In this document: positions 3,002 to 45,111 of the stretch, piece after piece | Layout: each line of letters opens with the position of its first letter | Position numbering within the stretch: position 1 is the first letter of the stretch | Notes under the pieces: generated by a model | What the model was told of the DNA's origin: nothing | Seen by the model: only the letters and a program-made list of their open reading frames with translations | The model's database searches: none | Translations under genes and position numbers: made by a program | Assembly (NCBI GenBank): GCA_002269645.1 | Contig: NIVC01001374.1 | Span: forward strand, 186,001-250,000 | Direction: 5' to 3' | Source: Macrostomum lignano | Lineage: Eukaryota | DNA length: 64,000 bases

Positions 3002-3965
3002 TCAGCTGTCAAGATAGACTTCGGCCCGGATGACATGCCCGGCAAGCTGCAGACGTCGCTTGCTCAGCAGGACAGAAGGCCGCGTCAGGTGCGCTCTCGC
3101 TGGTACGGGGAGTCGGTCATCTTGCTGCCAGGGCCGCGGCGGGCGCCGAACGCGGCACGAATCAGAGCCGTATGCGCCACATATGCGCCGAGCTGCCTCT
3201 CGAGCGCCCAGTACAGGGTCGAGGGCGGTCTCGACAACAGCCTGGAACAGCTGCCATGGGAACCTGGAGCTGTCCAATATAGAGCCTCCGAAAGCAGCTC
3301 CGCCCACAGATCGAAAGGCGGCCCAGGCCTTGCCGGCCGCGCCGTCTCCCAGGTCGTCGCTCACATCCGTCACCAGCCCGCTAAAGTAGAGGGGCTGACG
3401 GCACTTCGGATGCACCGTCCCAGGGCCATCGTGCCGTCTCTGAGTCTTATCTTGGCGGGTAGATCGTGGGGAACTGTCAGCACCTCGGTATTTTTGGCGT
3501 TGATGACGAGGCCGACCCTTACAGCCGCCGCAATCAGGCCATCCAGCAGCCGTTGGGGCGCCTTCGGCCGTCGTAGACAGCATGCAGAGCGAGGTCGTCC
3601 GAGCTAGTAGCCGAGGAGGAACAGCCTCTTCTCCGGGTGTCGCCGACTGGCGTCGTCTTTGCAGTAGAAGGCCGTTCTCTGCTGTCGGCAGGCCGCCGCC
3701 TCCTGAGCACACAGTCCATCAGCAAAACAAAGAGGAGAAGGGCGCCAGAGTGTCACGGCCTGCAGCACTCCGGAGGTCGTGCTGAACAGGTCCGACGGTC
3801 CGTCGGCGTCGCTACCACAGCGGTCGTGTCCTGGTACAGCGCCATGTTTGCGAAGATCAGCTACTGCGGTACGGAGCATGTGAGGGAGCGCACCGCGGGC
3901 CACCGAGTCGAAAGCCTTGAGGAAGTCGACAAAGCTTGATGAAACTGTTTGATGAAACGCAATTA
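3002..3965 (-). mobile_element. Degenerate non-LTR retrotransposon (LINE, RTE-like) reverse transcriptase fragment
   Basis: Frameshifted RT motifs FVDFLKAFDSV and TTSGVLQ, plus C-terminal segments GKAWAAF...LFQAVVETAL and SKRRLQLAGHVIR typical of LINE ORF2. Confidence 0.8.
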
Positions 3966-4697
3966 AAATGCATAGCTTTTTTCTTGGCGCCATGCAAGTC
4001 TCAGCTGCCCCAACAGAATATACATGTATGATTGGATCATACCCATGCAGAACACGTGCATGCAGTACATATACATGTACATATGTGTACATGTAATTAT
4101 AAAGTACAAATAGATTTTACAAACGGAAACTGTAGATCTTTAATTTTTAAAGGGCTTCAAAATAAGGCAGTATAATTAGGTTCCCGTAAGAAATGAAATA
4201 CATTATACTCGCGTGTATTTTAGCTTGTTACACGTACACTGTTAAAGTAAAAATAAATTGTAGTAACATCCATCTCCTTGGCTTGGACGCTGAGTTAAAG
4301 ATTGTTTAGGCAGAATAATACATATATGTATTTATAAAAGAAAAACTTTCAATAGACTCGTTTGCTAACAAAAACTAGCAACAAAAATAGCACAAATAAT
4401 TAACATAAACTTAAAAATAGTTTAGCTTAATTTTACACAGAGAAGAAAGAGTCTTTTGACGACATGCTGACTGAGAAGTGAACGGGTTATTTAAAGTCTT
4501 CTATTAGCTAATGGTATTTACAGCTGTTTGCTAGTAATGAGGCTGGTCCAAAAGGCCCGATTAAATAGCCGTCAGCCAACCATATTGTAATAATTTCCTT
4601 TAACTTAATGGCTAACAAACTTCAACAGCAGTTTTTTTTGCTAAATTCATTCTTGACCATACTTAGTCCGGATCCTGACAGTAACTTATTAGAATGT

Positions 4698-6612
4698 TCA
4701 CGCGGTTTGTTTGTCAATACCAAGATAAGCTTTCGCTCCACCAGCGAGACCCGTTCTGTCGGGATCAATTGTTTGAGCTGTCGGATCACTTTTTCCGGAT
4801 TTGGATAGAGCAATGCCAGCAGCTCCAGTAGCGGCCAAGCCGGTTGTGGCAGCGCCAGCACCTATGAAGCCGATTTTCTTTTTGTGTGGACCGATAGCCC
4901 CACCCGCTTTTTTAAAGAAGCCTCCGCTCTTTTTGCAGGGCAGAAACGGATTCTGGCAGCCGGGATTATCCAAGTCGGCGGACTTTTTTGATTTCCCCTT
5001 TTGAGCCGCACCGGCCTTCTTACCCACGGATTTCACCAGGCCGCCCTCGTTGCAGGGAAAAAACGGATTTTTACACCCGGGATTATCCATGTCGGTAACG
5101 CTGGACTTCCTGTTTGCGTTGCCCGGCGCGTCGCCGGCTTTCTTAGCAGATTTCAGCTTAAAAAACGATTTCGCTCGCGATTTCACTGCAAACAAGGATT
5201 GAATAGATTGTAGCAATCACAGCTACTCTCACCAACCACAGCTGCTCTCACCAATCACAGCTTCTCTCACCAATCACAGCTGCTCTCACCAATCACAGCT
5301 GCTCTCACCAATCACAGCTTCTCTCACCAATCACAGCCTGCTCTCACCAATCACAGCCTGCTCTCACCAATCACAGCTACTCTCACCAACCACAGCTGCT
5401 CTCACCAATCACAGCCTGCTCTCACCAATCACAGCCTGCTCTCACCAATCACAGCTGCTCTCACCAATCACAGCTTCTCTCACCAATCACAGCCTGCTCT
5501 CACCAATCACAGCCTGCTCTCACCAATCACAGCTTCTCTCACCAATCACAGCCTGCTCTCACCAATCACAGCTTCTCTCACCAATCACAGCTGCTCTCAC
5601 CAATCACAGCTTCTCTCACCAATCACAGCTTCTCTCACCAATCACAGCCTGCTCTCACCAATCACAGCTTCTCTCACCAATCACAGCCTGCTCTCACCAA
5701 TCACAGCCTGCTCTCACCAATCACAGCCTGCTCTCACCAATCACAGCCTGCTCTCACCAATCACAGCCTGCTCTCACCAATCACAGCCTGCTCTCACCAA
5801 TCACAGCTTCTCTCACCAATCACAGCTGCTCTCACCAATCACAGCCTGCTCTCACCAATCACAGCTTCTCTCACCAATCACAGCTTCTCTCACCAATCAC
5901 AGCTTCTCTCACCAATCACAGCCTGCTCTCACCAATCACAGCCTTCTCTCACCAATCACAGCCTGCTCTCACCAATCACAGCCTGCTCTCACCAATCACA
6001 GCTTCTCTCACCAATCACAGCTTCTCTCACCAATCACAGCCTGCTCTCACCAATCACAGCTTCTCTCACCAATCACAGCTGCTCTCACCAATCACAGCTT
6101 CTCTCACCAATCACAGCTTCTCTCACCAATCACAGCCTGCTCTCACCAATCACAGCTTCTCTCACCAATCACAGCTTCTCTCACCAATCACAGCTTCTCT
6201 CACCAATCACAGCCTGCTCTCACCAATCACAGCCTGCTCTCACCAATCACAACCTGCTCTCACCAATCACAGCTTCTCTCACCAATCACAGCTGCTCTCA
6301 CCAATCACAGCCTGCTCTCACCAATCACAGCTTCTCTCACCAATCACAGCCTGCTCTCACCAATCACAGCTTCTCTCACCAATCACAGCCTGCTCTCACC
6401 AATCACAGCTTCCCTCGACTTCACTTCCTACTAATAAAATTATTGAATTTCTCAGACATTCAATGTGCAAATTAATAATAAAGCATTATTTCCATAAACT
6501 CGATAAACTCACATGATTTTACTGCTTTCGGGCAGCATTGGCCGCCGCTTGGAAACTGGCTGACAATCGTGAGCAGAATAAAGTAAATTGCTATAAAGCT
6601 TTGAGTTCGCAT
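4698..6612 (-). CDS. Secreted cationic protein A0, 195 aa, two exons (6612-6513, 5185-4698)
   Basis: Exon 1 MRTQSFIAIYFILLTIVSQFPSGGQCCPKAVKS (signal peptide) with phase-1 GTGAGT donor; acceptor ttgtttgcag; exon 2 continues in frame: K-rich, two DNPGCxNPFxPC repeats, Gly/Ala-rich hydrophobic stretch IGFIGAGAATTGLAATGAAGIAL. Confidence 0.8.
5215..6412. repeat. 19-20-bp minisatellite (ctctcaccaatcacagc[tt/ctg]), ~60 copies, in the A0 intron
   Basis: Direct tandem periodicity visible in the sequence. Confidence 0.97.
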
Positions 6613-7064
6613 GAGAAGTCTGCCTAAGCATTTACTGGAGCTTGTACATGAAGAAATTTGTGTGGGTCTGTTGTTTTAGTTGGAAAATCAATATTATTTC
6701 AATATTGGCCTTCGCTAGCTTGCTCGGTTATTTGGGGCAATCAGATCTTTTTCTATATCCAGAATTACTACATATAATTAATTCAGACCATAGATACAAC
6801 TACTCTCTATCGATTGATGTAGATACTATTTTTGTAACTTGAAGATTATTTAAACAAATACATATACATACAAATACAAATACAAATACATAAATAGTTT
6901 ACTGCTCGGCTATGAAGGAAGAATCCAATGGATTTAATTCAAGGTGAAGACGAAAGAGGTGATAGATTCCACACGCGACCTGCGAATTGCCTTTCCATCT
7001 GGCCCTCAAGTCCTTTGTAACTTCACAATAGCAATCATCTGGCCTACCTCCGCTCTCTAATCTC

Positions 7065-7825
7065 CCGTCTCATCTCCTCTCTCTCCTCTCTTTTCTTTCC
7101 TTTCATCTCTCATCTCTTCTTTCCTCTCATCTCTTCTTTCATCTCATTTCTTTCTTCATCTCTCCTCTCATCTATCATCTCATCTCTTCTTTTCTTTCAT
7201 CTCTCATCTCTCATCTCATTTATCCTCTCATCTCTTCTTTCCTTTCATCTCTCATCCCTCATCTCATCTATCCTCTTATCTCTTCTTTCCTCTCATCTCT
7301 TCTTTCATCTCTCATCTCTTCTTTCATCTCATCCCTTCTTTCATCTCTCCTCTCATCTATCATCTCATCTCTTCTTTCATCTCATCTCTTCTTTCATCTC
7401 TCCTCTCATTTATCCTCTCATCTCTTCTTTCCTTTCATCTCTCATCTCTCATCTCTCATCTCATCTATCATCTTATCTCTTCTTCCTCTCATCTCTCATC
7501 CTTCATCTCATCTATCCTCTTATCTTATCTTTCCTCTCATCTCTTCTTTCATCCCTCAACTCTTCTTTCATCTCTCATCTCTTCTTTCCTCATCTCCTCT
7601 TTCATCTCATTTCTTCTTTCATCTCTCCTCTCATCTATCATATCATCTCTTCTTTCCTTTCATCTCTCATCTCATTTATCCTCTCATCCCCTCTTTCCTT
7701 TCATCTCTCATATTATCTATCCTCTTATCTCCGCTTTCCTTTCATATTTGATCTCATCTATACTCTTATCTCCTCTTTCCTTTAATCTCTCATCTCATCT
7801 ATCCTCTTATCTTCTCCTTCCTCTT
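7065..7825. repeat. Pyrimidine-rich low-complexity tract (tctcatc/tcttctt)
   Basis: Nearly G-free CT/CAT-rich tract; a related purine-strand copy with similar flank lies at ~38840-39010. Confidence 0.9.
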
Positions 7826-8154
7826 CTAAGTCTAAGATTCTAATGTCAGGCTGTTTTGATGACGCTGTAGGCTTTTTACAATAAATAATTTGACATAGGC
7901 TGTGTCAAAACACAATTTTAACAAGCCCACCTACTCTCAGTTTCTCCTGTTTGCTTCTGATCGCATTTTAGATGAGCGGCGTCTTTCTTAAGATGCCAAT
8001 TTAAAATTGTCTATGGCAATTTATTGTCAAACCAACGAAATTTATTTATTGCCAACAAAAATTTTTCGTAATCTTCGTAGAAATATCGGTTTAATATGTT
8101 GTTCAACAGCCCTACAGGAGTGTCTGTTTAAAAAATAACTTAACTGCAACCTAA

Positions 8155-9555
8155 ATGGGATGCATAAGATTAGCATTGCTATTTAGCATTGTGCTGGTGA
8201 TCCTCATCGAACCTGGTGAAGGCTGTGTCAAGAAATTGAAGGCTTTGAAAGGTGGTAAGTAGTCAGTCTTGCAGTTGGCAATGAAATTGGTAAAACTTGA
8301 GACTGCTCGAATTCATATGGCCTTTTTTAACACGCTCGTACTGAGATCAACGCGGGAGGGAGCTGTCGTGCGATTCGGGCACAGAAAGTGTACATGCCTG
8401 ATGATTGGACAGTCAAAGGGCCGCTGTACACCCAAGGACAATTTAAGTAGAACGCAACACTCGAAATCTGTGGTAAATATTTTGAAGGCAACTTTTCGCC
8501 GAAAAATACAGTATAGGAGGATTTAATCTTTTCAGCACAAAAATTGTTATTGCTTTTGATAGGAGGCAGATCCAGTGTTCATCTTTTGGTATGTTGTGCC
8601 TTTTTTATTGCTCTATCGATATTCATAGAGCTTTTCGTTCAGAAATAGTTTTAAAGGAAGGTTTCACCGGAAAAATACATTAAGGAGATAGGAAATTTCA
8701 CGATTTTCAACACTAAAACAGTGATTGGGTCTCTTAACAGTGTCAGAGAAAGTTCTAATCACACTATTTTGTGCCTCACATGCTGCTCTCACGACGCATT
8801 AATCGATTTTTCATGTTAAATTGGTCTGTCACTTGAAAAAAACGTTTAAAATAATTACAAGACCAATATAAAGGCGAAAAGTTGCCTTCAAAACATTTAC
8901 CAATAGATTTCGAGTGAGGCGCGCTTGTGTACACCCTGTGTGAGGCGCGCTTGTGTACACCCTGTGTGAGGCGCGCTTGTGTACACCCTGTGTGAGGCGC
9001 GCTTGTTTACACCCTGAGTGAGGCGCGCTTGTGTACACCCTGTGTGAGGCGCGCTTGTGTACACCCTGTGTGAGGCGCGCTTGTGTACACCCTGTGTGAG
9101 GCGCGCTTGTGTACACCCTGTGTGAGGCGCGCTTGTGTACACCCTGTGTGAGGCGCGCTTGTGTACACCCTGTGTGAGGCGCGCTTGCATGCAGAATTGC
9201 CTCAGCGCTGCGGCTGTGGGAAGATGTCGCCGAAGCGTATCCCAATTATTATTGCTATTATTTTCTAAATGCCACTGGGCATTCATTCATTTCATTCTAA
9301 CAAAACTTCGCGCCCCCAGCTTTCAAGAGAGTCGGCAAGGTGTTCAAAATAGCCAGACGCCCAAAAGCCGCCAAAGTCATTGCGAATTCTGCGGACGACG
9401 TTGGCAAGGTGGCCAAGAAGTCCAAGAGCTTCAGCACGGCGCGCTCGCTCCTCATTGGTGGCACGGTTGGAGGTGCGGCACTGGGGGGCGCCGTGTACGT
9501 GGGGGTAAATGAGAAGAAAAAAGGCATGAGCAGCGGTTCGTACGTCACCCACTAA
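8155..9555 (+). CDS. Secreted cationic amphipathic/Gly-zipper peptide precursor A1, 111 aa, two exons (8155-8254, 9320-9555)
   Basis: Exon 1 MGCIRLALLFSIVLVILIEPGEG-CVKKLKALKG with GTAAGT phase-1 donor; acceptor cgcccccag; exon 2 AFKRVGKVFKIARRPKAAKVIANSADDVGKVAKKSKSFSTARSLLIGGTVGGAALGGAVYVGVNEKKKGMSSGSYVTH*. Exon 1 has a close paralogue in A2. Confidence 0.85.
8458..8916. mobile_element. MITE-like element with ~43-bp terminal inverted repeats in the A1 intron
   Basis: cactcgaaatctgtggtaaatattttgaaggcaacttttcgcc (8458-8500) is the near-perfect reverse complement of ggcgaaaagttgccttcaaaacatttaccaatagatttcgagtg (8873-8916); no TSD found. Confidence 0.65.
8913..9187. repeat. 26-bp minisatellite (gtgaggcgcgcttgtgtacaccctgt), ~10 copies, A1 intron
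   Basis: Direct tandem periodicity. Confidence 0.97.
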
Positions 9556-9949
9556 GAGACCCTGCACAGACATGCATGAGGAAATAATGTGTACTTTGCG
9601 GTATTCTTATACTCGAAATACTCGTTGCGTATTCAATTGTTAAGTATATAGCCAATTTACCAAAAATGTTTCTTTTAAAATTTATTTGTAAATCAGCACA
9701 GTTTCTTTTAAATTAGATCCAGATCTACGTAGTTTGCCAAAATTGCACTTTGAGCAGTTGAAATGTGTTTTTGTAAATTTTGTTTTACTGGATGTTATTT
9801 TTACCGGTATGTCATCGGCAGAGGACTCGTGACTTTAGTTTTAACATATAATATAAATAAAGCTTCGTAGACAGTTTCAGTTGTGCTTCACAGATTATAT
9901 CTCATATATTCTTATAGTGACTATGTACTCAATTCTTTTAAGCTTGCAT

Positions 9950-10425
9950 CATTCACCTTGGTAATCACCCACCTTGGTAATCACCCACCTTGGTAATCAT
10001 TCACCTTGGTAATCATCCACCTTGGTAATCGTCCACCTTGGTAATCATTCACCTTGGTAATCACCCACCTTGGTAATCACCCACCTTGGTAATCACCCAC
10101 CTTGGTAATCACCCACCTTGGTAATCACCCACCTTGGTAATCATCCACCTTGGTAATCACCCACCTTGGTAATCACCCACCTTGGTAATCACCCACCTTG
10201 GTAATCACCCACCTTGGTAATCGTCCACCTTGGTAATCATTCACCTTGGTAATCACCCACCTTGGTAATCACCCACCTTGGTAATCACCCACCTTGGTAA
10301 TCATCCACCTTGGTAATCGTCCACCTTGGTAATCATCCACCTTGGTAATCACCCACCTTGGTAATCATCCACCTTGGTAATCGTCCACCTTGGTAACCAC
10401 CCACCCATCACCATCCGCCTTGGTG
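9950..10425. repeat. 16-bp minisatellite (ccaccttggtaatcac), ~29 copies
   Basis: Direct tandem periodicity between A1 and A2. Confidence 0.97.
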
Positions 10426-10832
10426 ATCAGAATAAAATAAACCACAGCGTAATAATGTCATTTATTCGAATATAAACATTTAAATGCATTGCAAAGGTGG
10501 TCTTTGCTTAAGTTTTACTTAATTCTATCTCGAACAAAACTGCAAGACGACTAATTATAATTATACTGGTGCAGTGAATAAGAGCTTGTTGTTTGCTGCA
10601 GTAATTTGTTACTTTTTTAATAAAGGGACTTTTTTATTATTATACGGCAGTCAGATCATGTCTATGGTAATCTACTATCAACCTAAATGCTTGAAATCGC
10701 TAAAAAATTGATTGCCGAAAAAAGCAACTTGAGCCTCGATGCATCACCTGCCGGTTGTAGTTGTCATCTTGGTAGAAATATCACTTCAATAGAGCAGTCA
10801 TACAAGAGAGTAGAGAATAACTGGGACCTATA

Positions 10833-12331
10833 ATGGGTTACATAAGATTAGCATTGTTATTTACCATTGTGCTGGTGATCCTCATCGAACCTGGCGATGG
10901 CTGCTTTAGGAAATTGAAAGGTGGTAAGTAGTCAGCCTTGCTTATGTGCCTTAAAATTAGAAATTATACTATAATGCATAAGAGAATTACCCAATTGGCA
11001 TTAGTATCAAAATTGGTTTACAGTAGTGCTCTTGCGGAATCACCCGGTTGGTTCAGGGCTCATGGGGGGAATCACCCGGTTGGTTCAGGGCTCATGAGGA
11101 ATCACCCAGTTGGTTCAGGGCTCATGAGGAGTCACCCAGTTGGTTCAGGGCTCATGAGGAATCACCCAGTTGGTTCAGGGCTCATGAGGAATCACCCAGT
11201 TGGTTCAGAGCTCATGAGGAATCACCCAGTTGGTTCAGAGCTCATGAGGAATCACCCAGTTGGTTCAGGGCTCATGAGGAGTCACCCAGTTGGTTCAGGG
11301 CTCATGAGGAATCACCCAGTTGGTTCAGAGCTCATGAGGGGAATCATCCAGTTGGTTCAGGGCTCATGAGGAATCACCCAGTTGGTTTAGGGCTCATAGG
11401 GAATCACCCAGTTGGTTCAGGGCTCATAGGGAATCACCTAGTAGGTTCAGGCCTCTAGAGGAATCACCCTGTTAATTGATTTAGGGCTCATAGGGAATCA
11501 CCCAGTTGGTTCAGGGCTCATAGGGAATCACCTAGTAGGTTCAGGCCTCTAGAGGAATCACCCTGTTAATTGATTCAGGGCTCATAGGGAATCACCCATT
11601 TGGTTCGGGGGCGTATGGGGGAGTTGCCGAGTGGCCTCGAATGCGCTGCTAAGATTTAATTCTGAAAGAAAGAATGCTTATATCATAGGCCGAAAAGTTT
11701 TGATATTGGCGCACTTAAATGTGCTCGGGACTTTGTGCTGCCGTAATGGAAATATGTGCAACCGACAGCTCAGCCGCAGTTATCTCAGCGGCTGTTCAGT
11801 CCAAGGACTGGGGGGTCGCCACACACAGCCTCAATTACCCCAGCTAATGCTGGCACCCATTTTACAGCTGGGTGAACTGAAGCTATGCAGAGGTTAAGTG
11901 TCTTTCTCAAGGACACAAATTGTTCCAGTAGGATCAGGAATCGAACCCCCGACCTTGAACCACTAGGCTACAGTCCCCTGTGAATATTGTTACAACTATA
12001 GTATAGGCAGGCACTGATCCGAAACTGAGAGCCGCAACCCCAACCCGCTTCTAATTCGCACGCAGCGGTCAAGGCGGTTGGCAGGCGCGTCGGTCGAGTA
12101 TTCGGACGCGGAAAGAAGGCGCCGAAAGCGGCCGCCGATATTGCCCAAAGCGCCGAGAAGGTGGGCAAAACAGCTAAAAAAAGCCCCAGTGCGACAAAAA
12201 CAGCCGGAATCAGTGTTGGCACTGGAATGCTTGCCGCCGGTACCATTGGTGGTGTCAGTTTGGGCTACACAAATAACAAGAAGAATCGGATGCAAAGCGA
12301 GAGCGCTCCGCCTCCTGTCACATACAAATAG
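10833..12331 (+). CDS. Secreted cationic amphipathic/Gly-zipper peptide precursor A2, 118 aa, two exons (10833-10923, 12066-12331)
   Basis: Exon 1 MGYIRLALLFTIVLVILIEPGDG-CFRKLKG with GTAAGT phase-1 donor; acceptor ttcgcacgcag; exon 2 AVKAVGRRVGRVFGRGKKAPKAAADIAQSAEKVGKTAKKSPSATKTAGISVGTGMLAAGTIGGVSLGYTNNKKNRMQSESAPPPVTYK*, which aligns to A1. This frame is absent from the ORF track. Confidence 0.85.
11035..11605. repeat. 30-bp minisatellite (gaatcacccagttggttcagggctcatgag), A2 intron
   Basis: Direct tandem periodicity; explains the repetitive ORFs at 10938 and 11048. Confidence 0.97.
11745..11975 (-). mobile_element. tRNA-derived SINE copy
   Basis: Reverse complement of the SINE at 46318-46600 (tRNA-like head ggttcgattcc, body tttgtgtccttgag...cagttcacccagctgtaaaatgggtgccagcatt). 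Confidence 0.8.
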
Positions 12332-13305
12332 AAGCCGGCCACGGACAAAAATGTTGGCTACGACCTTACAATCTCTACGCTTAGTACACCATGACAGACA
12401 TTTACTATTTCTTTCCAGCTTTCATTTGTTAATTGAGTGCAATTTGATTTCCTCTACATTTTAAGGCCTCTGTAATGCATTTATACTCGTAGTTGTTTCA
12501 TTAGCATTGGCAACTTTTGTATTTAGTTTATCTGATGCTGGAAAAATGCTTAAACACTTTCAACAATTACAGTTAGACAGAATACAGACTCATGTTCCAC
12601 TAAGTGTGGCGGCAGTGAATTTCGAAAAACTTTACTTGACTTTCCTATTAATTGCTTATCAGGTTAAAAGTACATGTGCACACCGTGGCTGCATGGAGAG
12701 GAAGATCACAGAAAAGCGAAAGCAACACTGCTTCCAAGGGGGGTTGTGCCTGCCCGAGGAAAAAACAAACCAAACTTGCTAATTACTTGATAAGTCAACA
12801 ATGGAACCTCGTGGCGAGGACAGCCTAAGTAAAGTACATTCGATAAGTACTTTCCAAGTACTTGAATGTAGAGACAGGCGTGTACTTTGTAAACTTTTCA
12901 AGTCGATTGAACTTGGACAAAAGCATTGCATATACTGTTTAAGTTCATGACAATGATACTTTGCAAACTTGATAAGTCAACAATGTCATCCAAGTGCATG
13001 GTTGACTTTGAAAGTTTAGCATGTGTATTTTTCCGGTTGGCATCTCTGGGACTAAAGTTCGCAAAGTTTTTTTTGTTAAAATTTACGTTTTGATCGATTG
13101 CGAACTCGCAGAGTTTGCTATAGCCATAAAGCATGCACAGTTAATAGTTAAAAGATTGCCCACAGTCTACAGCAGCCACCCTATCTATGGGCTCACTCAC
13201 GGGTAAAGAAGCGGCTGAGAAAATCATAGTTAGGTAGACAAAAGTGCACTTTGCGAGACGCGGGCTAGAAGAAGAAGCTCGGACTGCAAATCAGATTAGC
13301 TTGAA

Positions 13306-13855
13306 ATGGTGCTATTGAAATGGTCGATGAAATGCCTGTTGCTGGCAGTCATTCTGCTAGCTGTGCTGCCGGACTATAGCAGCGGATGCAAAGCGGCGGT
13401 CAATAAGGGTGAGTTGGCAATTCCAACCGCATGTTTTCATTCAGTAAAAACAGTAAAAAGGACTATAAGAGGGGAATGTCATGCCATTAACAGCCGTGAT
13501 GACAAAGCCTTAAAAAGTCAGTCAGTTTATGAACAGACTCTGACAAAACACACTTTTCCCCATGCTATATTTAACAGTGAAAGAGTTCTACAAGTCTTAC
13601 ACGCTAAAGAAAAAACCGAAAGAGGAAACTGACGAAGCCGAAAAGAAGAAAAAGCAGGAGGCAGAAGAAAAAGAATACAAGAAGAAATTGGACGAGGCCA
13701 AAGCGAAAATGCGACAGCGAAACAAACAGCTCCTTGAAACCATAGCAACCGAGCGCACCAAGCAGGAGTCTCTGCTGGAGCAGCGGAAGAAGAAAGGCGA
13801 GAAGAAGATCGCAGGCATTGTGGCCACCACCACTGGTACGCAAATAATCCTCTAG
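13306..13855 (+). CDS. Secreted Lys/Glu-rich coiled-coil protein B1, 126 aa, two exons (13306-13408, 13578-13855)
   Basis: Exon 1 MVLLKWSMKCLLLAVILLAVLPDYSSG-CKAAVNK, phase-1 GTGAGT donor; acceptor tttaacag; exon 2 VKEFYKSYTLKKKPKEE...KKKLDEAKAKMRQR...KIAGIVATTTGTQIIL*; homologous to B2. Confidence 0.85.
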
Positions 13856-14294
13856 ATTGCGGAGACCGCTCCGCAACCATCAGCTGCAGTTTTATTTATT
13901 AAGGACGAAACCGAGATAATTGACAGTTTAAGGCGCAGCTCAAGACAAAAGCCTGAGAAGTTTTGTTAATATTCTAGAGTTCTACTGGTCAGGAAATTTA
14001 ATTTCGTTTACTTTACTGGATCGGTTTATAAATAATACACAGGACAGTGTTTTAACTCATTTTTAATTGCCTGTTTTATTGCAATTTCTCATTCAATTAG
14101 ATGTATTGCGATTTTCAAGAGGATAGAGAAGTACGAGCTATTTGTGCAGCACTGTATTGTCTATTGTGGTATTAGAGAGAAAAAAACTGCTATGGCAATT
14201 ACCGCTGGCACGGACTGCTCGGTTTCAGCTTGCAGGAGTGTAAGCTGCCGGGTAGGATTAATTATGGAGGGCGCTGAAGCGTCAGCACCAGGAT

Positions 14295-14592
14295 ATTTAG
14301 CACCAGTGGTTTTAGCACCAGTGGCTTTAGCACCAGGGGCTTTAGCACCAGTGGCTTTAGCACCAGTGGTTTTAGCACCAGTGGTTTTAGCACCAGTGGT
14401 TTTAGCACCAGTGGCTTTAGCACCAGGGGCTTTAGCACCAGTGGTTTTAGCACCAGTGGTTTTAGCACCAGTGGCTTTAGCACCAGGGGCTTTAGCACCA
14501 GTGGCTTTAGCACCAGTGGCTTTAGCACCAGTGGTTTTAGCACCAGTGGTTTTAGCACCAGGGGCTTTAGCACCAGGGGCTTTAGCACCAGG
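14295..14592. repeat. 15-bp minisatellite (ttagcaccagtggct), ~20 copies
   Basis: Direct tandem periodicity; source of the PVALA/GAKAT/LKPLV ORFs. Confidence 0.97.
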
Positions 14593-15265
14593 GACGATTG
14601 CATGGAAAGGCGGAAGGCCATGCAGCCACCAGTCCAGTTGAACGCGGAGCTCGCCCGCCACGGGAATCCGGCGATGACACCCGTTGATGGTGTTGGTGAC
14701 GTCAATTCGAGCTCGCAGAAAGACTCGAGCGGGGCGAGCCACCTTGCAAAAACCAGCCGATTTTGCCCACCAGCTTTTGATGTTGAAGCTTTGACAGACT
14801 CTTAGCGCTCAAACCTCCATGCAGCAACATCCGCAGCTCATCTGTCTTGCTCTGCGGCAGGGATAGCAGCTAGACCGGATGTGCTGTCGATTTGCACTCC
14901 CAGGAATGTGATACACGTAGCAGGTGGGCTGGTATTTTCCCAATCGATGCAGCTAATCCCAGCGTGGGAGGCAAGTCGTATGAGCTTCTAAAAAAACAAC
15001 AACGCACACCGCCGGGGAACAGACTACAGTTCACAAAGGTCGGTGTCGGATCAGTCTTCTCACAGCGCTGGCTCTCTGAAGGCGGCTACAGCGTGCACCT
15101 GGCCAATCACCCCAGCGTAATCCAGCTAGCAATCCGCGAAGCACATCCGGAAGTACAACACAATTAGAATAAATAAAATGCAGGTATAAAAGTGGGAACA
15201 TAAAGTCAATATTTGCTAGTCTGAACTCGAAATGTGAGTAAAGGAAACGACAGTGTACGTCAATA

Positions 15266-16337
15266 TTGTGGGTCAATATCGTACGTCAATATCAGTCACT
15301 TCGCCCTGGAGTGCACCCTGGCCAAAGTCCTAACACCATCCTTCGAAACCGCATTCAACCCATCATCAACCAGAGGCTTCTCAATATCCAGAACGGCTTC
15401 CGACCTGGACGGTCAACAGCAAAAACAAGTCGCTGCGGTCCGGTGCATCATAGACACCTGCAAGACTCGCCAAAAGGCGGTGTCAATTGTTTTTGCAGAT
15501 TTGTGCAAAGCTTTTGACTCAGTCAGCCGGGCGGCCAGGCCATTGCGTAGCTCCTCCAGCAGCATGGAGTTTATCAGATGCTGGTCCAGGCGATCATGGA
15601 CCTCTACAGCTCATCCAAGGCGCTTTCGTCTAGACTGACCACGGCCCTAAAGCTGAATTGACAACCACTTCCGCAAAGCGACACCTGTTTGTATTCGTCA
15701 TCCTGATCGACTTCGTCATGCGGTTGGCTCTGCGCGATGAAGACGGCTATGAAGTGGTGTTTCGCCGTAGCTCCCGCTTTGCCTGCGTCAAGCCGACCTG
15801 CCTCGCCTGCGCCGACGACCTGGCGCTGACCTGCTGCAGTCCCGAAGCTGCGCAGACGGCGGTGAGTCGGCGGACCAACGAGGGGAAGCGCGTGGGGCTC
15901 CACATCAACTACGGCAAGGCAGAGGTGCTGCATGTTGGCATTGCCAACTCTCCACTGCTGCTTCTGCCGGACAGCAACACCATCGCCCTGTGCAACCAGT
16001 TCAAGTATCTGGGGTGTCCTGGTCTCTGACCCGGATGTCATTGTCAACAACCGCAAGCACAGCCTGGTGGGCCTCCCACCTTCTCCGCTCCATCTTCAAC
16101 TACTGGCTCGCCACCGACAGCCTGAACGTCGCCCTATTCCGCTCGGCAGTTGAGACGGTGCTGACCTACGGGCTGCTGGAAACTGTTCCCATGACTGCCA
16201 CTCGTCAGGCGAGCTTGGAGGGCTGCCATCGCCACCTCATGCACAATGCCCTGGGCATCCGGTTCCCCGAGCGCGTGAGCAACGCCGAGCTGGCGGCCCG
16301 GACCCGCGTGGTCGCAGAGACGACGCCAGATGTCTGA
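15266..16337 (+). mobile_element. Degenerate non-LTR retrotransposon (LINE) reverse transcriptase fragment
   Basis: Frameshifted RT motifs QNGFRPGRST, VFADLCKAFDSVSR, ACADDLAL, GLHINYGKAEVL, QFKYLG and LFRSAVETVLTYG. Confidence 0.85.
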
Positions 16338-16492
16338 CTATCGACCAACAGTATAATAATGTGCAAATAAGGAACAGGAATACAAATCAGCAGTAATATA
16401 TTAGATGTGAAGTAACCAGTAATTGCGGCAATTAAGCTTTATATACGCAAAGCGCGCTATTACTAAAATGCATTATTATATGGTACATAGCG

Positions 16493-17238
16493 ATCGCAGA
16501 AGTGCGCCAAAATGAACTAGTTGAATTAGTGGGACATCGCAGAAGTGCGCCAAAAAGAAGTAGTTGAATTAGTGGGACATCGCAGAAGTGCGCCAAAATG
16601 AACTATTTGAATTAGTGGGACATCGCAGAAGTGCGCCAAAATGAACTAGTTGAATTAGTGGGACATCGCAGAAGTGCGCCAAAAAGAAGTAGTTGAATTA
16701 GTGGGACATCGCAGAAGTGCGCCAAAATGAACTAGTTGAATTAGTGGGACATCGCAGAAGTGCGCCAAAATGAACTAGTTGAATTAGTGGGACATCGCAG
16801 AAGTGCGCCAAAAAGAACTAGTTGAATTAGTGGGACATCGCAGAAGTGCGCCAAAAAGAACTAGTTGAATTAGTGGGACATCGCAGAAGTGCGCCAAAAT
16901 GAACTAGTTGAATTAGTGGGACATCGCAGAAGTGCGCCAAAAAGAACTAGTTGAATTAGTGGGACATCGCAGAAGTGCGCCAAAAAGAACTAGTTGAATT
17001 AGTGGGACATCGCAGAAGTGCGCCAAAATGAACTAGTTGAATTAGTGGGACATCGCAGAAGTGCGCCAAAAAGAACTAGTTGAATTAGTGGGACATCGCA
17101 GATGTGCGCCAAAATGAACTAGTTGAATTAGTGGGACATCGCAGAAGTGCGCCAAAATGAACTAGTTGAATTAGTGGGACATCGCAGAAGTGCGCCAAAA
17201 TGAACTAGTTGAATTAGTGGGACATCGCAGAAGTGCGC
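16493..17238. repeat. 43-bp minisatellite (cgcagaagtgcgccaaaatgaactagttgaattagtgggacat), ~17 copies
   Basis: Direct tandem periodicity with high identity. Confidence 0.97.
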
Positions 17239-17490
17239 GACCAAAAGTTAAGCAGTTTTAGAAACCCATTGTACTGCGACGTTTAGGTTTAGTTTAGCTT
17301 TGTTTAGTTTAGCACAATGATATGTTGCATACACAAATTTCTCCCTCCCACTCTCTCCATTTTCTTTCATTATTCCCGATAAGATCAGAAAAAGCCCAGT
17401 AAATAATAAAATGCCCGAAATGGCTGCATTTCAGTCTGGTACACTTCGACTCATGGATTTGCAGATGGATGAGAGGCTGCAGCTTCGTCG

Positions 17491-18936
17491 TCATTGTGAC
17501 CGCAGTGCATTCAGTTGCTCTACTAGCCAAGGGAGATACGCAGTGGAGCGTAGTTTCCTTTTAGCGGACCAGAAGCCGGCTACAACGACATATCTACTCT
17601 TCATGTTGTCGGTTACTTCGTTAATGCTGACATAAACTGGACACATTTCCATAACAGACCTTTTAAAAATTGGAAAGCCATCGATGCACACTGAATACGT
17701 GAGGTCACTTCGTGAGCCCAGTGCAATAGACCGCTTGAATGCCGCATACGCAGTTCCGCTACCCATGTAAAGACGTCCCACGTTCGCCGGCTGATCGACG
17801 GGATATATTACGTGGTCTAGAAGATGGCATTCTTCGATCATCTGTCGTACTTGGCTGCCTATATCCATTCGCCAGAAGTGCCCAACAGACTCTGGCGATT
17901 CCAATCTAGCATTACAATGCGGACAGTGATTTGGGCGCGGTTGTTGCATCTCGCGATCGCAGCTCAGACAATACACTGAAGGTCTGCATCTCGTGTAGGA
18001 GTACGGTGTCAGGTTTAGCAAATTGTCCAGCATTTGACGGGTCTGTGGAAACGCAGCATTTACAGGAAGCACGGCCTTTGTGTAGGCAAGCAATTTGTCG
18101 ACACCATGTACAGAAAGATTTTGAGCAAAGGCCAGACACTGAGCTAGGGTTCCAATTGCAGCGTATGACACAGTAGCGCCAGGATAGGCGGCCAACTGGC
18201 AAAAGTTACGCAGTTTAGCGTCGTCTGAATCATAATCATCGCCGTCACCGTCATCGCTGTATTCGGCATCGTCGGTAGGCGCTTGGCTGGCAGAGCTTTC
18301 GGTAGCTTCGCTGGCATCGCCGGCTTCACTGGCAGTTTCGCTGGCAGAGCTTTCGGTAGCTTCGCTGGCATCGCCGGCTTCACTGGCAGTTTCGCTGGCA
18401 GAGCTTTCGGTAGCTTCGCTGGCATCGCCGGCTTCACTGGCAGTTTCGCTGGCAGAGCTTTCGGTAGCTTCGCTGGCATCGCCGGCTTCACTGGCAGTTT
18501 CGCTGGCAGAGCTTTCGGTAGCTTCGCTGGCATCGCCGGCTTCACTGGCAGTTTCGCTGGCAGAGCTTTCGGTAGCTTCGCTGGCATCGCCGGCTTCACT
18601 GGCAGTTTCGCTGGCAGAGCTTTCGGTAGCTTCGCTGGCATCGCCGGCTTCACTGGCAGTTTCGCTGGTGGAGGCTTCGCCGGTAGATGGCGGTTGTGAA
18701 GTAGCTTCGCCGGTAGATGGCGGTTGTGGAGTACCTTCGCTACCGATGTCGTCGTCTGGATGACGGCGCTTATTACCACGATTCGTCTGTGGATTTCCAA
18801 TGGCGGCGCCCATTGCAGTCGTTCCAGATTGCAACCACTGTTGTCGCCTTTGAAATAGAAGCTGCACTGTCTTGCGTTCTCGAAATCGTTTCACTCTTAA
18901 ACGATTCATAATGGCGCGGCGTTGCTGGTCTTCCAT
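17491..18936 (-). mobile_element. CACTA/EnSpm-type transposase, C-terminally truncated, with an internal 54-bp coding repeat
   Basis: IDGFPIFKRSVMEMCPVYVSINEV...VVVAGFWSAKRK...YLPWLVEQLNAL matches the tnp2/Transposase_21-type catalytic start. It is preceded by a CxxC...CPHC zinc motif and ~7 copies of ASETASEAGDASEATESS (18283-18670). Confidence 0.75.
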
Positions 18937-19309
18937 GATAGAGATTTTTGTTCTTAATGATTCTTATCCTCTGCAAAAGTGGCAAACGTTCATGAGAAAT
19001 TAGTCAGTTGCTTCGTGGGTTACCGTCACTTCTCCTTATATACTGATTTGAAAGAGAACGTATCCCTGGGCATAGGTAATAAATTTGCTTCCCTATTCAT
19101 AACTATCACTTGTCCATACCTAACTATATATAACTGGGTATCCATGTGACCTATTTCAGGAGAGGCTACTCTGTAAAATTGTAAAGTAAAAATTCAGGCA
19201 ACAATAACACGTGCGTCACGCCGCACTCAAATTAAGCAACATAGTAGCAGCCTATTATGCAATGAAGACGACAACAGTTGGTAGAAAGCGACAAGTAGTA
19301 AACTCCACA

Positions 19310-20065
19310 ACAGAACAAAACGGTCACAAAATACGGTAACAGTGAACGGTAACATGTGACCCTGAACAAACGGTCACAAAATACAGTCACATTGAACGGT
19401 CACATGGTGACCCTAAACAAAACGGTCACAAAATACGGTCACATTGATCGGTAACATGTGACCCTAAACAAAACGGTCACAAAATACGGTCACATTGATC
19501 GGTAACATGTGACCCTAAACAAAACGGTCACAAAATACGGTCACATTGATCGGTAACATGTGACCCTAAACAAACGGTCACAAAATACGGTCACATTGAT
19601 CGGTAACATGTGACCCTAAACAAACGGTCACAAAATACGGTCACATTGAACGGTCACATGGTTACCCTAAACAAAACGGTCACAAAATACGGTCACATTG
19701 ATCGGTAACAGTGACCCTGAACAAACGGTCACAAAATACAGTCACATTGAACGGTCACATGGTTACCCTAAACAAAACGGTCACAAAATACGGTAACATT
19801 GATCGGTAACATGTGACCCTAAACAAAACGGTCACAAAATACGGTCACATTGATCGGTAACATGTGACCCTAAACAAAACGGTCACAAAATACGGTAACT
19901 ATGAACAGTCACATTGTTACCCTAAACAAAATGGTCACAAAGTACGGTAACATTGAACAGTCACCTGGTGACCCTGAACTAAACAGTCACAAATACGGTA
20001 AAAAATGGTAACTGGTGACCGTAACGGTAAAAAACACGGTAACAGCCCCTTTTTGTGACCGTTTC
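19310..20065. repeat. ~51-bp tandem repeat (aaacggtcacaaaatacggtcacattgatcggtaacatgtgaccctaaaca), probable subterminal repeats of the CACTA element
   Basis: Tandem periodicity upstream of the transposase; the core aaacggtcacaaaa also occurs inverted (ttttgtgaccgttt, ~20051-20064), as in CACTA subterminal arrays. Confidence 0.8.
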
Positions 20066-20725
20066 GTTTTATACGGGTTAGAGATTTAAACTTATTTGGA
20101 GCCACTGCAGGAGACTGTAAATTTTGGTGCACTGTGTGAATGCGGGCAGTGTGCGGTATCTTGGTTTCTGTTGCAGTTTTTCAAAGTTTTTAACTACCTC
20201 GTTGACCGAAGATGGCCAGACCGATGATGGTTGAAGAGGAAGAACCAATGGGATGGGTCGGAGAAGATACGTCGTAGTCATGTCAACCCTGATGTTGGTA
20301 CCTGACGAGTTGTGAGTTCTCAGCTTATTAATCTAGACTATAAATTCTTCCCTTAGTTTCATTTTGTAGTTATTTTAGACACGCTTAAATAGGTCACAAT
20401 TAGTTTGCAATCGAGTGGTTGAGAGTGAGAAAGTGTTTTGGCTGCTAGATCGAGTTGGATTCAAGCTGCCATTTGTTGGCTTTAACATGTAGCTGAGTGA
20501 ATGACGAATTCCAATCACTCTTCACCCGCGCGGTTCCCTGCATCTTTTTACCCAGAAACAAAAAGTAAATAAGTGGAATTTTACGCGCGCACTGAAGCCT
20601 GAGTGAGAAGGCCATAGACTATACTCTAGGGCGAGCTGTCAAAGTGTAGTTTACTAGGAAAGTAAAGCTGCGAGGCTAAGCCCATCTATCTTATCGGCAA
20701 CGCTCCTTTCGGATGCCAACAAGTA

Positions 20726-21234
20726 ATGGCATTTTTCAGATACCTAGCATTGCCTGCAATCTTGTTCGCGGTTTTTGTACAATACAGCGAAGGATGCAAA
20801 AAACCGGCTCCTGTGCAGCAGGGTGAGTGAGTCAAAGTTGTGCCGCCGTTACTATTATGTTATTATTGGACCAGCATATTAAAAGTAGCGATCTGTAGGA
20901 CCTGATTCGATGCAGTCATTGAACCCGCCCCACAGTTCAGCAGAATGTTGAAGCAAACTATGAGCTAGAACAGCGGCTGGCGCAAGAACAGCGCGAGCGT
21001 GACAACGCCGAGAGGTTGCGGCGAAGAGCCGAACAAAAGAAGAAAGAAGAGCAATACAAGAAGGAATTGAAGGAGGCAAAAGCGAAAATGAAGGAGCGCA
21101 AAGAGAAGATTCTAAACTTGGTCGCGGCCCAGCGATCATACCAGATTGCTCTGATGAAGAAGCGCAAAAAGAACGGGGCTCAGAAAATATACGGTGTCGA
21201 CGCGGAGGTAACAGGCACCCAGCTTGTCATATGA
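20726..21234 (+). CDS. Secreted Lys/Glu/Gln-rich coiled-coil protein B2, 131 aa, two exons (20726-20822, 20936-21234)
   Basis: Exon 1 MAFFRYLALPAILFAVFVQYSEG-CKKPAPVQQ, phase-1 GTGAGT donor; acceptor ccccacag; exon 2 VQQNVEANYELEQRLAQEQRER...QYKKELKEAKAKMKERK...KIYGVDAEVTGTQLVI*; homologous to B1. Confidence 0.85.
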
Positions 21235-22614: not shown

Positions 22615-23190
22615 TTATTTCGACAGGCTGTTCAGAAGGCCGAGCAGCCGGTCCAGTGTGCTCACAATGGCATCAGTCTTGGCGCAGTCCGAACTCTCAA
22701 GCAGGCGAGCCTGATAGTAATCAATCCGGTCAAGAGTGGCCGCCCGCAGTCTCTCTTCAACACAGACGCGGTCCTTGCCAGCCTGTGCTTGGCTGCGCGA
22801 TGGCGCCTGCGAGCTGGCAACGGAGGCGGCGGCTGCGGCGGCCTCTCTGGCGTGGACTCGGGCGGCCGACTCCGACTGAGCCGGGTCGTCTTTGCTAACG
22901 TCGGACTCGAGCTCGCGACAGGCGATGCAATAGTTGCCACCGCCGTTGCTCACCTCCATGAGGATGGTGCCGCAGTCGGGGCACACGTGGTCCAGCATTT
23001 TCCAGCCTTTGAGCAGGTACTCGCCCATCCGTTTGGCGATCTTGTCCGAGCGCTCGCGGCGAGCTTTCAGAACTTTCTGCTCCGCCTCGGTTGGCGGGCG
23101 CCACTCGGCATCGAAGCTGGCGTCGCCATTGTCGGCAGTTGATGATGAAGATGCGGCTGCTTGTTCGCGGAGTAGACTGCGAAAATCCAT
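22615..23190 (-). CDS. ZNRD2: ZNRD2/SSSCA1-like zinc-ribbon protein, single exon, 191 aa
   Basis: RRERSDKIAKRMGEYLLKGWKMLDHVCPDCGTILME...YCIAC matches the Auto_anti-p27/SSSCA1 zinc ribbon. Confidence 0.9.
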   Translation of the reverse strand: MDFRSLLREQAAASSSSTADNGDASFDAEWRPPTEAEQKVLKARRERSDKIAKRMGEYLLKGWKMLDHVCPDCGTILMEVSNGGGNYCIACRELESDVSKDDPAQSESAARVHAREAAAAAASVASSQAPSRSQAQAGKDRVCVEERLRAATLDRIDYYQARLLESSDCAKTDAIVSTLDRLLGLLNSLSK

Positions 23191-29951: not shown

Positions 29952-29989
29952 GGCTGCAAGGTTAAGCTAGCTAATCAGAATATTTAGAG

Positions 29990-30165
29990 ATTCCATTAGG
30001 AGTATCTGGGACACTGTTAGGATATTATTCTATAGAGTCTAGTAGGAGTATCTGCCTATATCTGGGACACTATTGGGCGATTATATAGTCCATTAGGAGT
30101 ATCTGGGACACTGTTAGGCGATTATATAGTCCATTAGGAGTATCTGGGACACTATTAGGCGATTA
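29990..30165. repeat. 41-bp minisatellite (gtccattaggagtatctgggacactattaggcgattatata); same family at 35250-35537
   Basis: Two arrays of the same unit on either side of the large satellite block. Confidence 0.9.
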
Positions 30166-44700: not shown

Positions 44701-45111
44701 AAGCTTTCCTCAGTGTCGGTCTATATTCAATAGCTGGTATTTTGGCCATAGACGTGTTCCAACATCAGCTTCAAACACAATTCATGCATTCAACCCGCAG
44801 GACACGCAGAAGAAGGGTACCATTGACTATGCCCAGTTCAAGAGCAGCGTTGTTGATGAGCCACTCCTGTTGCAGGCTCTCGGTGCCTGCCTGCCGGACG
44901 AAAAGGTTTGAAAGGCTTAATATACTCCAGCATGACTACTTGACTGGGCGAACTCCAGTAGTCTAGACTGTTAAAGCATTATGCCCATTGTTACACGCTC
45001 GAACCTACATGTACTGCATTGCAGAGCGCAGACGCATTCTTGTGCACATTCGAGGAGGTCCACGTTCCAACGACGATCTCCTACATTCGCACGGGCGGTG
45101 GAAGGCAATAA
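41756..45111 (+). CDS. EFCAB1: Calaxin / EF-hand calcium-binding domain protein 1, 218 aa, seven exons (41756-41819, 42240-42383, 42467-42571, 42692-42777, 43704-43769, 44801-44905, 45025-45111)
   Basis: [71 protein letters not shown] and [14 protein letters not shown] match calaxin; all splice phases join in frame. Confidence 0.92.
44310..44622. repeat. 18-bp intronic minisatellite (ttgaccatagacggtgtt)
   Basis: Direct tandem periodicity. Confidence 0.92.

Follow-up and report, generated by a model that had tools for sequence, protein, structure and literature searches.

A compact cluster of five diverged, Macrostomum-restricted genes for small secretory-pathway proteins, probably male-reproductive, in the flatworm Macrostomum lignano

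We analysed a 64,000-nucleotide stretch of the genome of the flatworm Macrostomum lignano (hereafter the window; positions 186,001 to 250,000 of contig NIVC01001374.1, assembly GCA_002269645.1), in which five two-exon genes, named here A0, A1, A2, B1 and B2, lie in a cluster spanning about 17 kb. On balance, we lean towards reading the locus as a co-regulated tandem cluster of five old, diverged and Macrostomum-restricted genes, which encode small, fast-evolving secretory-pathway proteins of the adult testis region with a probable male-reproductive role. The proteins would most likely be associated with spermatids or sperm, or be secreted by the testis. The locus is not a new kind of biological system; what is new here is its cluster-level anatomy, a rule that places a cysteine at the mature N-terminus, a split between A-type and B-type chemistry, and a shared upstream element, TCTATGG.

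Splicing of the window sequence produced an intact frame for every gene (Table 1). In five of five genes the donor was GTGAGT or GTAAGT, the AG acceptor followed a pyrimidine-rich tract, and the intron lay in phase 1; exon 1 covered a signal-like peptide of 23-27 residues and the next 7-10 residues, and exon 2 encoded 77-161 residues. A preliminary description, made from the letters alone, had proposed exactly this arrangement of signal exon, phase-1 GT-AG intron and single mature exon, with A0 on the minus strand and the other four on the plus strand; all of it was confirmed in the sequence, and the residue counts it gave for the two exons match our spliced models. The spliced products were identical or 97-99% identical to the annotated M. 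lignano hypothetical proteins PAA68728.1-PAA68732.1. Since this annotation derives from a genome-guided RNA-seq transcriptome assembly with open reading frames (ORFs) called by TransDecoder (PMC5730564), the splice junctions rest on transcripts, and the agreement of our models with the GenBank entries gives them spliced-transcript support. We also scanned both strands of the 64 kb for first exons, requiring an ATG, at least 10 hydrophobic residues among some 12 consecutive residues close to it, and a reading frame that stays open up to a GT[AG]AG donor. The scan found only the five cluster exons and one internal in-frame ATG of B1, and the pattern is therefore specific to this locus.

The heptamer TCTATGG occurred exactly five times within positions 1-30000 of the window, counting either strand, with one site per gene. 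The same five-only pattern was found in the other two genomic copies of this 20.5-kb region, and across copies the site lay 114-189 bp upstream of the start codon. TCTATGG was the only 7-mer common to the five bands from -200 to -100; among random sets of five 100-bp bands from the window, any shared 7-mer appeared in 1 of 20,000 draws, and among random four-band sets, which allow for the duplication of A1 and A2, in 24 of 20,000. Around the heptamer no extended similarity was detected except between A1 and A2, the two genes that have a second upstream element. These sequence comparisons make a good case for a regulatory input common to the five genes. Elsewhere in the window, a tandem array at 44083-44752 contained 18 TCTATGG copies, and single sites occurred at 31256, 45497, 47173 and 57829.

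Published expression data place three of the genes in the testis region. A1, A2 and B1 carry the label 'arbore2015_testes_region / Testis / Up-in-A' in the entries of Table S1 of Wiberg et al. 2022 (PMC10092323) and are also entered as 'Testis region' in the supplement of Wiberg et al. 2021 (PMC8662610). Testis-region, reproduction-related genes of Macrostomum (the Arbore 2015 and Wiberg 2021 and 2022 sets) are marked by positional RNA-seq class [+,0,0] and by higher expression in adults than in hatchlings, and A1, A2 and B1 are listed there by gene ID. Some 48% of the germline genes of M. lignano are confined to the species or genus (PMC5816591), so a locus of this kind is ordinary for this worm.

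Signal peptides were judged by rule: the n-region had to be positive, the core hydrophobic, and the residues at -1 and -3 small. In all five N-termini, the positive charges numbered one or two, the hydrophobic core scored 1.6-2.4 on the Kyte-Doolittle scale, and a polar stretch containing Pro or Gly followed. In four of the five proteins (A1, A2, B1 and B2), the predicted cleavage sites GEG/C, GDG/C, SSG/C and SEG/C put the lone cysteine at mature residue 1, followed by basic residues within six positions (CVKK, CFRK, CKAA..K and CKKP). The predicted mature chain of A0 had six cysteines, a CC pair at the same position and two C-x6-C loops, which lie in its duplicated motif D-x-D-N-P-G-C-x-N-P-F-x-P-C. 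A position-independent Hessa hydrophobicity sum did not cleanly separate the signal peptides themselves, and we dropped it as a criterion for transmembrane versus secreted proteins.

Beyond the N-terminus, the proteins divided into two chemistries. A0, A1 and A2 were highly basic, with net charges of +17 to +21 and isoelectric points (pI) of 10.0-11.0, whereas B1 and B2, which are 42% identical, were of mixed charge (K+R 26-29%, D+E 15-17%, net +12, pI 9.6-9.9); the term 'highly basic', first applied to all five, thus holds for the A proteins and fits the B proteins loosely. A1 and A2 are 59% identical, with mature chains of 88-95 amino acids (aa) whose first 50 or so residues hold most of the net +17. 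Their maximum hydrophobic moments (0.66 and 0.73) compare with 0.66 for cecropin A on the same scale and were matched by 94 and 12 of 2000 shuffles, respectively. A GxxxGxxxG segment of 20-22 residues, of borderline hydrophobicity (Kyte-Doolittle 1.3-1.55), is present in both, and after it comes a short terminal tail whose first residues are KKK or KKNR. A0 was not significantly amphipathic in the shuffle test; after its basic region, exon 2 encodes a Gly/Ala-rich hydrophobic segment IGFIGAGAATTGLAATGAAGIAL and then a 35-residue tail, and an internal DNA repeat is visible. For B1 and B2, amphipathicity fell below the shuffle mean. AlphaFold2 modelled B1 as a single long helix spanning residues 49-107, with a predicted local distance difference test score (pLDDT) above 90 for residues 61-90, and in our reading the hydrophobic residues of the conserved B1/B2 core follow a heptad-like spacing. 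The conserved B-type C-terminus is TGTQ(I/L)(I/V)(L/I).

From these features we propose how the proteins may work. They would enter the endoplasmic reticulum through the cleavable predicted signal peptide, and cleavage at the predicted sites would leave the only cysteine of A1, A2, B1 and B2 N-terminal, where it could form an intermolecular disulfide and link the chains as homo- or heterodimers. The cationic amphipathic helix of A1 and A2 might lie on anionic membrane surfaces in a cecropin-like manner, and their GxxxGxxxG segment could either serve as a weak type I transmembrane anchor in the membrane of sperm or vesicles or drive insertion into a target membrane and oligomerisation. B1 and B2 would each be an extended charged helix whose core has heptad-like spacing, and would act as a rod or coiled coil rather than as a membrane binder, and A0 may add its two small Cys-x6-Cys loops to the A-type plan. 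A bolder version, which we consider unlikely, takes the N-terminal cysteine as the mark of a novel class of proteins delivered by sperm and linked or modified at that residue, either as A-B disulfide heterodimers, in which a membrane-seeking cationic helix is paired with a charged rod, or by N-acylation of the kind known from Hedgehog and Spitz. Their targets would be rival sperm or the antrum epithelium of the partner, which would make them agents of sexual conflict between hermaphrodites, and a single testis-specific cis-element, TCTATGG, would drive all five genes.

We then asked what the five proteins are related to. Scans of all five against Pfam and NCBIfam returned only sub-threshold noise; at E <= 1, Pfam gave nothing for A0 or A1 and only DUF3482 for A2 (E = 0.28). 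Sequence and profile searches of the PDB yielded no match for A0 or A1/A2; for the B proteins, the matches were chance coiled coils only. Word-indexed searches of 5.8 billion proteins with all three groups (A0; A1/A2; B1/B2) matched only M. lignano proteins, as did an exhaustive HMMER search of 1.84 billion representatives, run with the A1/A2 profile only. Two UniRef names, 'Gly-zipper_YMGG' for an A1+A2 chimera and 'DUF148' for B1, were not reproduced by current profile libraries. The UniRef entry A0A1I8JMV2 (P0003) is an older model that joins part of A1 exon 2 to A2 exon 2 and loses the reading frame thereafter, and this chimera is the reason for the name 'Gly-zipper_YMGG domain-containing protein'. 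The statement in the preliminary description that no known domain could be recognised therefore stands, because none of the Pfam, NCBIfam and PDB searches yielded a family.

Among the groups themselves, BLASTP of A0 against A2 gave E = 0.4, and an hhalign comparison of the A and B profiles aligned the signal peptide alone, at 21% probability; common descent of the three groups is not shown by these comparisons. Judged at the sequence level, the three groups share a gene design without demonstrable homology beyond the signal region. Introns in phase 1 just after the signal peptide are a general bias of genes for secreted proteins, so the shared design alone is no proof of common descent. Local duplication, proposed at the outset, was confirmed. 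In the mature exons of the paralogues, the proportion of non-synonymous differences (pN) was 0.35-0.40 against a proportion of synonymous differences (pS) of 0.84-0.89, at which synonymous sites are saturated; the A1/A2 signal exon was much less diverged (pS 0.41, pN 0.10). By these sequence measures, the paralogue pairs are old and under purifying selection.

Comparative data from the genus extend this picture. As we interpret the table columns of the published supplement (PMC8662610), the orthogroups of A2, A1 and B1 cover 6, 8 and 8 Macrostomum species, none of which lacks sperm bristles, and the B1 row ends in a value of 0.363, which we take as omega (PMC8662610). In the published entries, the bit-score decay slopes of these three orthogroups were -5.79, -4.21 and -6.57, the slopes of most ubiquitously expressed orthogroups were -0.1 to -2, and the estimated probability of detecting a homologue at a genetic distance of 0.7 was 0 for all three. 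The very steep decay of similarity explains why database searches were empty outside M. lignano. The claim of lineage specificity is thus borne out, with database matches only in M. lignano and orthologues listed only in close congeners, 6-8 Macrostomum species by the same supplementary entries (PMC8662610). The word 'undescribed' needs qualification: the genes already have entries as hypothetical proteins, and three of them figure in published genus-wide analyses of evolution, while we found no description of the cluster or of the protein features.

The cluster is present three times in the assembly: two further contigs (loci L002 and L003) carry all five genes in unchanged order and orientation. 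The M. lignano genome contains 312 Mb of duplicated sequence (PMC5730564) and the species has been called a hidden polyploid (PMC10468722); three copies of the cluster fit such a partly duplicated genome. Identity among the copies was 99-100% in exons and 91-98% in introns and flanks, B2 in L003 being the sole exception, and apart from that gene the copies differed by 0-4 codons per gene, too few for dN/dS. B2 in L003 (14382-14888) differed from the window gene (20726-21234) by 10-11 non-synonymous and 3 synonymous codon changes, all within the N-terminal half of the mature chain, with the C-terminal ~65 residues invariant. This pattern could reflect locally relaxed or positive selection, on counts that are small. 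Intron length varied among the three copies, with 1327, 950 and 1085 bp for A0 and 1142, 1390 and 1362 bp for A2.

Several known systems resemble the cluster in part. The male-tract beta-defensins of mammals (DEFB126, SPAG11) are tandem two-exon genes with a signal exon and a small cationic mature exon, and their products are sperm-associated and diverge rapidly. The cluster shares this two-exon tandem design, in design only and with no evidence of homology: beta-defensins have a six-cysteine, three-disulfide fold, whereas A1, A2, B1 and B2 have one cysteine and A0 has six in another pattern. No sequence or Pfam match to defensins was found for the cluster, the host is a flatworm, and the region concerned is that of the testis rather than the epididymis. 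Cecropins are linear cationic peptides made with a signal peptide; their N-terminal helix is basic and amphipathic, and their C-terminal helix is more hydrophobic. In Drosophila, the male-specific andropin gene adjoins the cecropin cluster. A cationic amphipathic helix followed by a hydrophobic segment is seen in A1 and A2 but not in A0, B1 or B2; in addition, the mature chains of A1 and A2 have 88-95 aa against about 35, with the glycine-zipper segment and a polar tail as extras, and the cluster had no Pfam Cecropin match or homologue.

Bacterial glycine-zipper lipoproteins of the OsmB/YMGG type are likewise small, with a signal peptide followed by a cysteine and a GxxxGxxxG segment. However, the cluster proteins had no Gly-zipper_YMGG match in Pfam or NCBIfam (E <= 1-10), and the HMMER search with the A1/A2 profile returned no bacterial match. 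The residues before the cysteine (G-E-G, G-D-G, S-S-G and S-E-G) lack the Leu at -3 of a lipobox, the genes have spliceosomal introns, and the likeness is compositional. B1 and B2 resemble the nematode SXP/RAL-2 proteins (DUF148) in being small, secreted, helical and rich in K and E, and UniRef labels B1 a 'DUF148 domain-containing protein', but neither matched PF02520 at E <= 1 and the PDB profile search gave only chance coiled-coil matches. Other Macrostomum testis and germline genes (the Mlig-sperm1 family; 643 testis-region orthogroups in the published supplement, PMC8662610) share with the cluster the organism, positional class, fast evolution and the lack of homologues outside flatworms. 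Mlig-sperm1 is backed by functional data, whereas the five genes described here stand out as a compact cluster with a common exon design, the N-terminal cysteine and a shared motif.

Reading the cluster as male-reproductive has to be weighed against several points. The class 'testis region' refers to a body slice in unreplicated positional RNA-seq (PMC4490696), and of six testis-region transcripts tested in that study, four were testis-only and two were in a gut-cell subpopulation; none of our five genes was seen among the Arbore 2015 in situ transcripts (PMC4490696). A0 and B2 have no expression label among the entries listed in PMC10092323 and PMC8662610, and their membership in the co-expressed set is suggested by the shared motif and by adjacency; according to the latter source, only about 14-16% of reproduction-related genes survived orthogroup filtering (PMC8662610). 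The literature searched contained no in situ, RNA interference (RNAi) or proteomic data for any of the five genes. AlphaFold2 placed a helix at residues 23-44 of A1 with low confidence (pLDDT 49.5), and the hydrophobicity of the glycine zipper is borderline, so that membrane-anchored and released forms are both possible. The absence of the five gene IDs from the main texts of the literature searched, and from the entries listed in the supplements of Wudarski 2017, Grudniewska 2018 and Brand 2020, says little.

These points leave room for other functions. The preliminary description had offered defence, predation, and reproductive or adhesive secretion. In the published entries, the testis-region class and adult upregulation of A1, A2 and B1 favour reproduction and the positional class speaks against adhesion (PMC10092323, PMC8662610); nothing supports venom or predation, and defence survives only as a rival. 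In that rival, the proteins would be host-defence or digestive peptides of a gut-cell subpopulation at the level of the testes, A1 and A2 being cecropin-like antimicrobials and the testis-region label a positional artefact. A signal exon, a mature exon and tandem duplication are typical of antimicrobial-peptide loci, the amphipathicity of A1 and A2 is of cecropin grade, with a net charge of +17 and a hydrophobic glycine-zipper C-terminal half, and two of the six tested transcripts did turn out to be in such gut cells (PMC4490696). However, by the entries available A1, A2 and B1 are expressed more in adults than in hatchlings, although hatchlings feed too (PMC10092323). Moreover, B1 and B2 are not amphipathic and are 15-17% acidic, A0 is not significantly amphipathic, mature chains of 88-170 aa are long for linear antimicrobial peptides, and no Pfam match to Cecropin or another antimicrobial-peptide family was found. 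Because gut expression has an in situ precedent and A1 and A2 are cecropin-like in their chemistry, we grant this explanation a minor but appreciable chance.

The remaining explanations appear weaker. The prostate glands and adhesive organs of M. lignano are located in the tail, and we know of no venom apparatus in this diatom-feeding worm. Prostate seminal-fluid proteins, proteins of the adhesive or releasing glands, and effectors of venom or predation are therefore improbable candidates, the prostate and adhesive options being disfavoured because these organs lie in the tail and the genes fall in the testis-region class; small size, secretion, fast evolution and lineage restriction would nevertheless suit seminal-fluid proteins, and a basic charge could suit adhesion. 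Transcripts of these tail organs would be expected in the tail-region class, which the published entries keep separate, whereas A1, A2 and B1 are testis-region (PMC10092323, PMC8662610). It is very unlikely that the genes encode sperm nuclear basic (protamine-like) proteins, in which the N-terminal hydrophobic stretch would not be a working signal peptide and the Lys/Arg-rich chains would condense sperm chromatin. Testis-region, adult-upregulated expression in the listed entries (PMC10092323) and basic, low-complexity chains rich in Lys, Ala, Ser and Gly would agree with such a role, but the signal peptides and the composition disfavour it: five of five proteins show the classical n-h-c pattern (core Kyte-Doolittle 1.6-2.4), K+R amounts to only 18-29%, well below protamine-like proteins, B1 and B2 have their 15-17% of acidic residues, and the A-type hydrophobic glycine-zipper segment would be needless in a chromatin protein. 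Finally, the region is full of minisatellites and transposon fragments and its proteins are of low complexity, without homologues beyond the genus, as might be expected if the models were annotation or reading artefacts, that is, chance open frames in repeat-rich DNA. This explanation is effectively refuted: the models derive from RNA-seq (PMC5730564), all three genomic copies have the same structure and keep the exons better than introns and flanks (B2 in L003 excepted), the paralogues are saturated at synonymous sites yet still alignable as proteins, the first-exon scan gave no false positives elsewhere in the 64 kb, and the entries of PMC8662610 indicate orthologues in 6-8 congeners with an omega of about 0.36 for B1. 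Of the earlier proposal of a secreted effector locus, what is retained is a lineage-restricted, probably secreted and probably reproductive set of proteins; 'effector' overstates the case.

Table 1. Genes, exons and upstream elements of the cluster, in window positions
Feature	Position	Strand	Description
A0 gene	exon 1 6513-6612, exon 2 4698-5185	-	195 aa; spliced model, intact frame; PAA68728.1 / Mlig010768.g1
A0 exon 1	6513-6612	-	signal-like peptide MRTQSFIAIYFILLTIVSQFPSGG + QCCPKAVKS; phase-1 GTGAGT donor
A0 intron	5186-6512	-	mostly 19-bp minisatellite 5214-6410, about 62 copies
A0 exon 2	4698-5185	-	161 codons + stop; basic region with two D-x-D-N-P-G-C-x-N-P-F-x-P-C copies
A1 gene	exon 1 8155-8254, exon 2 9320-9555	+	111 aa; spliced model, intact frame; PAA68729.1 / Mlig005534.g1
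A1 exon 1	8155-8254	+	signal-like peptide MGCIRLALLFSIVLVILIEPGEG + CVKKLKALKG; phase-1 GTAAGT donor
A1 exon 2	9320-9555	+	cationic amphipathic helix, glycine-zipper hydrophobic segment LLIGGTVGGAALGGAVYVGV, KKK-containing tail
A2 gene	exon 1 10833-10923, exon 2 12066-12331	+	118 aa; spliced model, intact frame; PAA68730.1 / Mlig014360.g1
A2 exon 1	10833-10923	+	signal-like peptide + CFRKLKG; 88% nucleotide identity to A1 exon 1
A2 exon 2	12066-12331	+	cationic amphipathic helix, glycine-zipper segment AGISVGTGMLAAGTIGGVSLGY, KKNR-containing tail
B1 gene	exon 1 13306-13408, exon 2 13578-13855	+	126 aa; spliced model, intact frame; PAA68731.1 / Mlig025199.g1
B1 exon 1	13306-13408	+	signal-like peptide MVLLKWSMKCLLLAVILLAVLPDYSSG + CKAAVNK; phase-1 GTGAGT donor
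B1 exon 2	13578-13855	+	K/E-rich long helix, conserved C-terminus ...TGTQIIL
B2 gene	exon 1 20726-20822, exon 2 20936-21234	+	131 aa; spliced model, intact frame; PAA68732.1 / Mlig007023.g1
B2 exon 1	20726-20822	+	signal-like peptide MAFFRYLALPAILFAVFVQYSEG + CKKPAPVQQ; phase-1 GTGAGT donor
B2 exon 2	20936-21234	+	K/R/E-rich helix; C-terminal ~65 residues conserved with B1, N-terminal half variable
TCTATGG (A0)	6788-6794	-	182 bp upstream of ATG, sense
TCTATGG (A1)	8010-8016	+	145 bp upstream of ATG, sense
TCTATGG (A2)	10661-10667	+	172 bp upstream of ATG, sense
TCTATGG (B1)	13184-13190	+	122 bp upstream of ATG, sense
TCTATGG (B2)	20612-20618	-	114 bp upstream of ATG, antisense
GTAGAAATATC	8077-8087 (A1, -78); 10772-10782 (A2, -61)	+	second upstream element, A1 and A2 only

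Much of the DNA between and around the exons is repetitive. Minisatellites with periods of 15-36 bp make up most of the introns of A0, A1 and A2 (5214-6410, 8914-9187 and 11028-11610) and of the intergenic spacers (7068-7812, 9954-10405 and 14284-14593), and their copy numbers vary among the genomic copies. Between B1 and B2, a 3.7-kb stretch (16338-20077) is missing from L002 and L003; it contains a 43-bp tandem array (16493-17238), a 51-bp array (19314-19999) and a 481-aa ORF on the minus strand (17491-18936), in which a 54-bp unit is perfectly repeated seven times and the C-terminal part is rich in Cys. The stretch resembles a copy-specific mobile-element insertion, and this ORF was ruled out as a member of the cluster, since it sits in an insertion absent from two copies and had no significant Pfam match. 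ORF fragments at 3002-4092 (minus strand) and 15234-16337 (plus strand) carry a reverse-transcriptase-like motif, F-[VA]-D-[FL]-x-KAFDSV; by eye, they look like decayed pieces of retroelements of the long interspersed nuclear element (LINE) type flanking and within the cluster, and the tested retroelement-like fragments had no Pfam match at E <= 0.001.

Beyond the cluster, a single-exon gene similar to Sjogren's/scleroderma autoantigen p27 lies at 22615-23190 on the minus strand (Pfam Auto_anti-p27, E = 4e-15), and this gene comes after the cluster in all three genomic copies. It is followed at about 26000-30000 by exons of an ankyrin-repeat protein on the minus strand (Pfam Ank families, E about 1e-20, for 29406-29951), whose homologue in L002 is annotated with a 578-aa product. 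Farther along, a large first exon at 54749-55609 on the plus strand ends in an Ion_trans_N domain (E = 7e-24), an N-terminus typical of HCN-type cyclic-nucleotide-gated cation channels.

The locus offers a worked example of how orphan genes arise by divergence beyond detection, with old paralogues and yet published decay curves that predict no detectable homologue beyond close congeners. Sexual selection in hermaphrodites is studied with M. lignano as a model, transgenesis and RNAi both work in this worm, and five co-regulated testis-region genes of the secretory pathway within one 17-kb cluster make a convenient knock-down target. If TCTATGG turns out to confer tissue specificity on promoters, reporters could usefully be built with it, and the cluster could be used to ask what fast-evolving male proteins do in sperm function or in sexual conflict.

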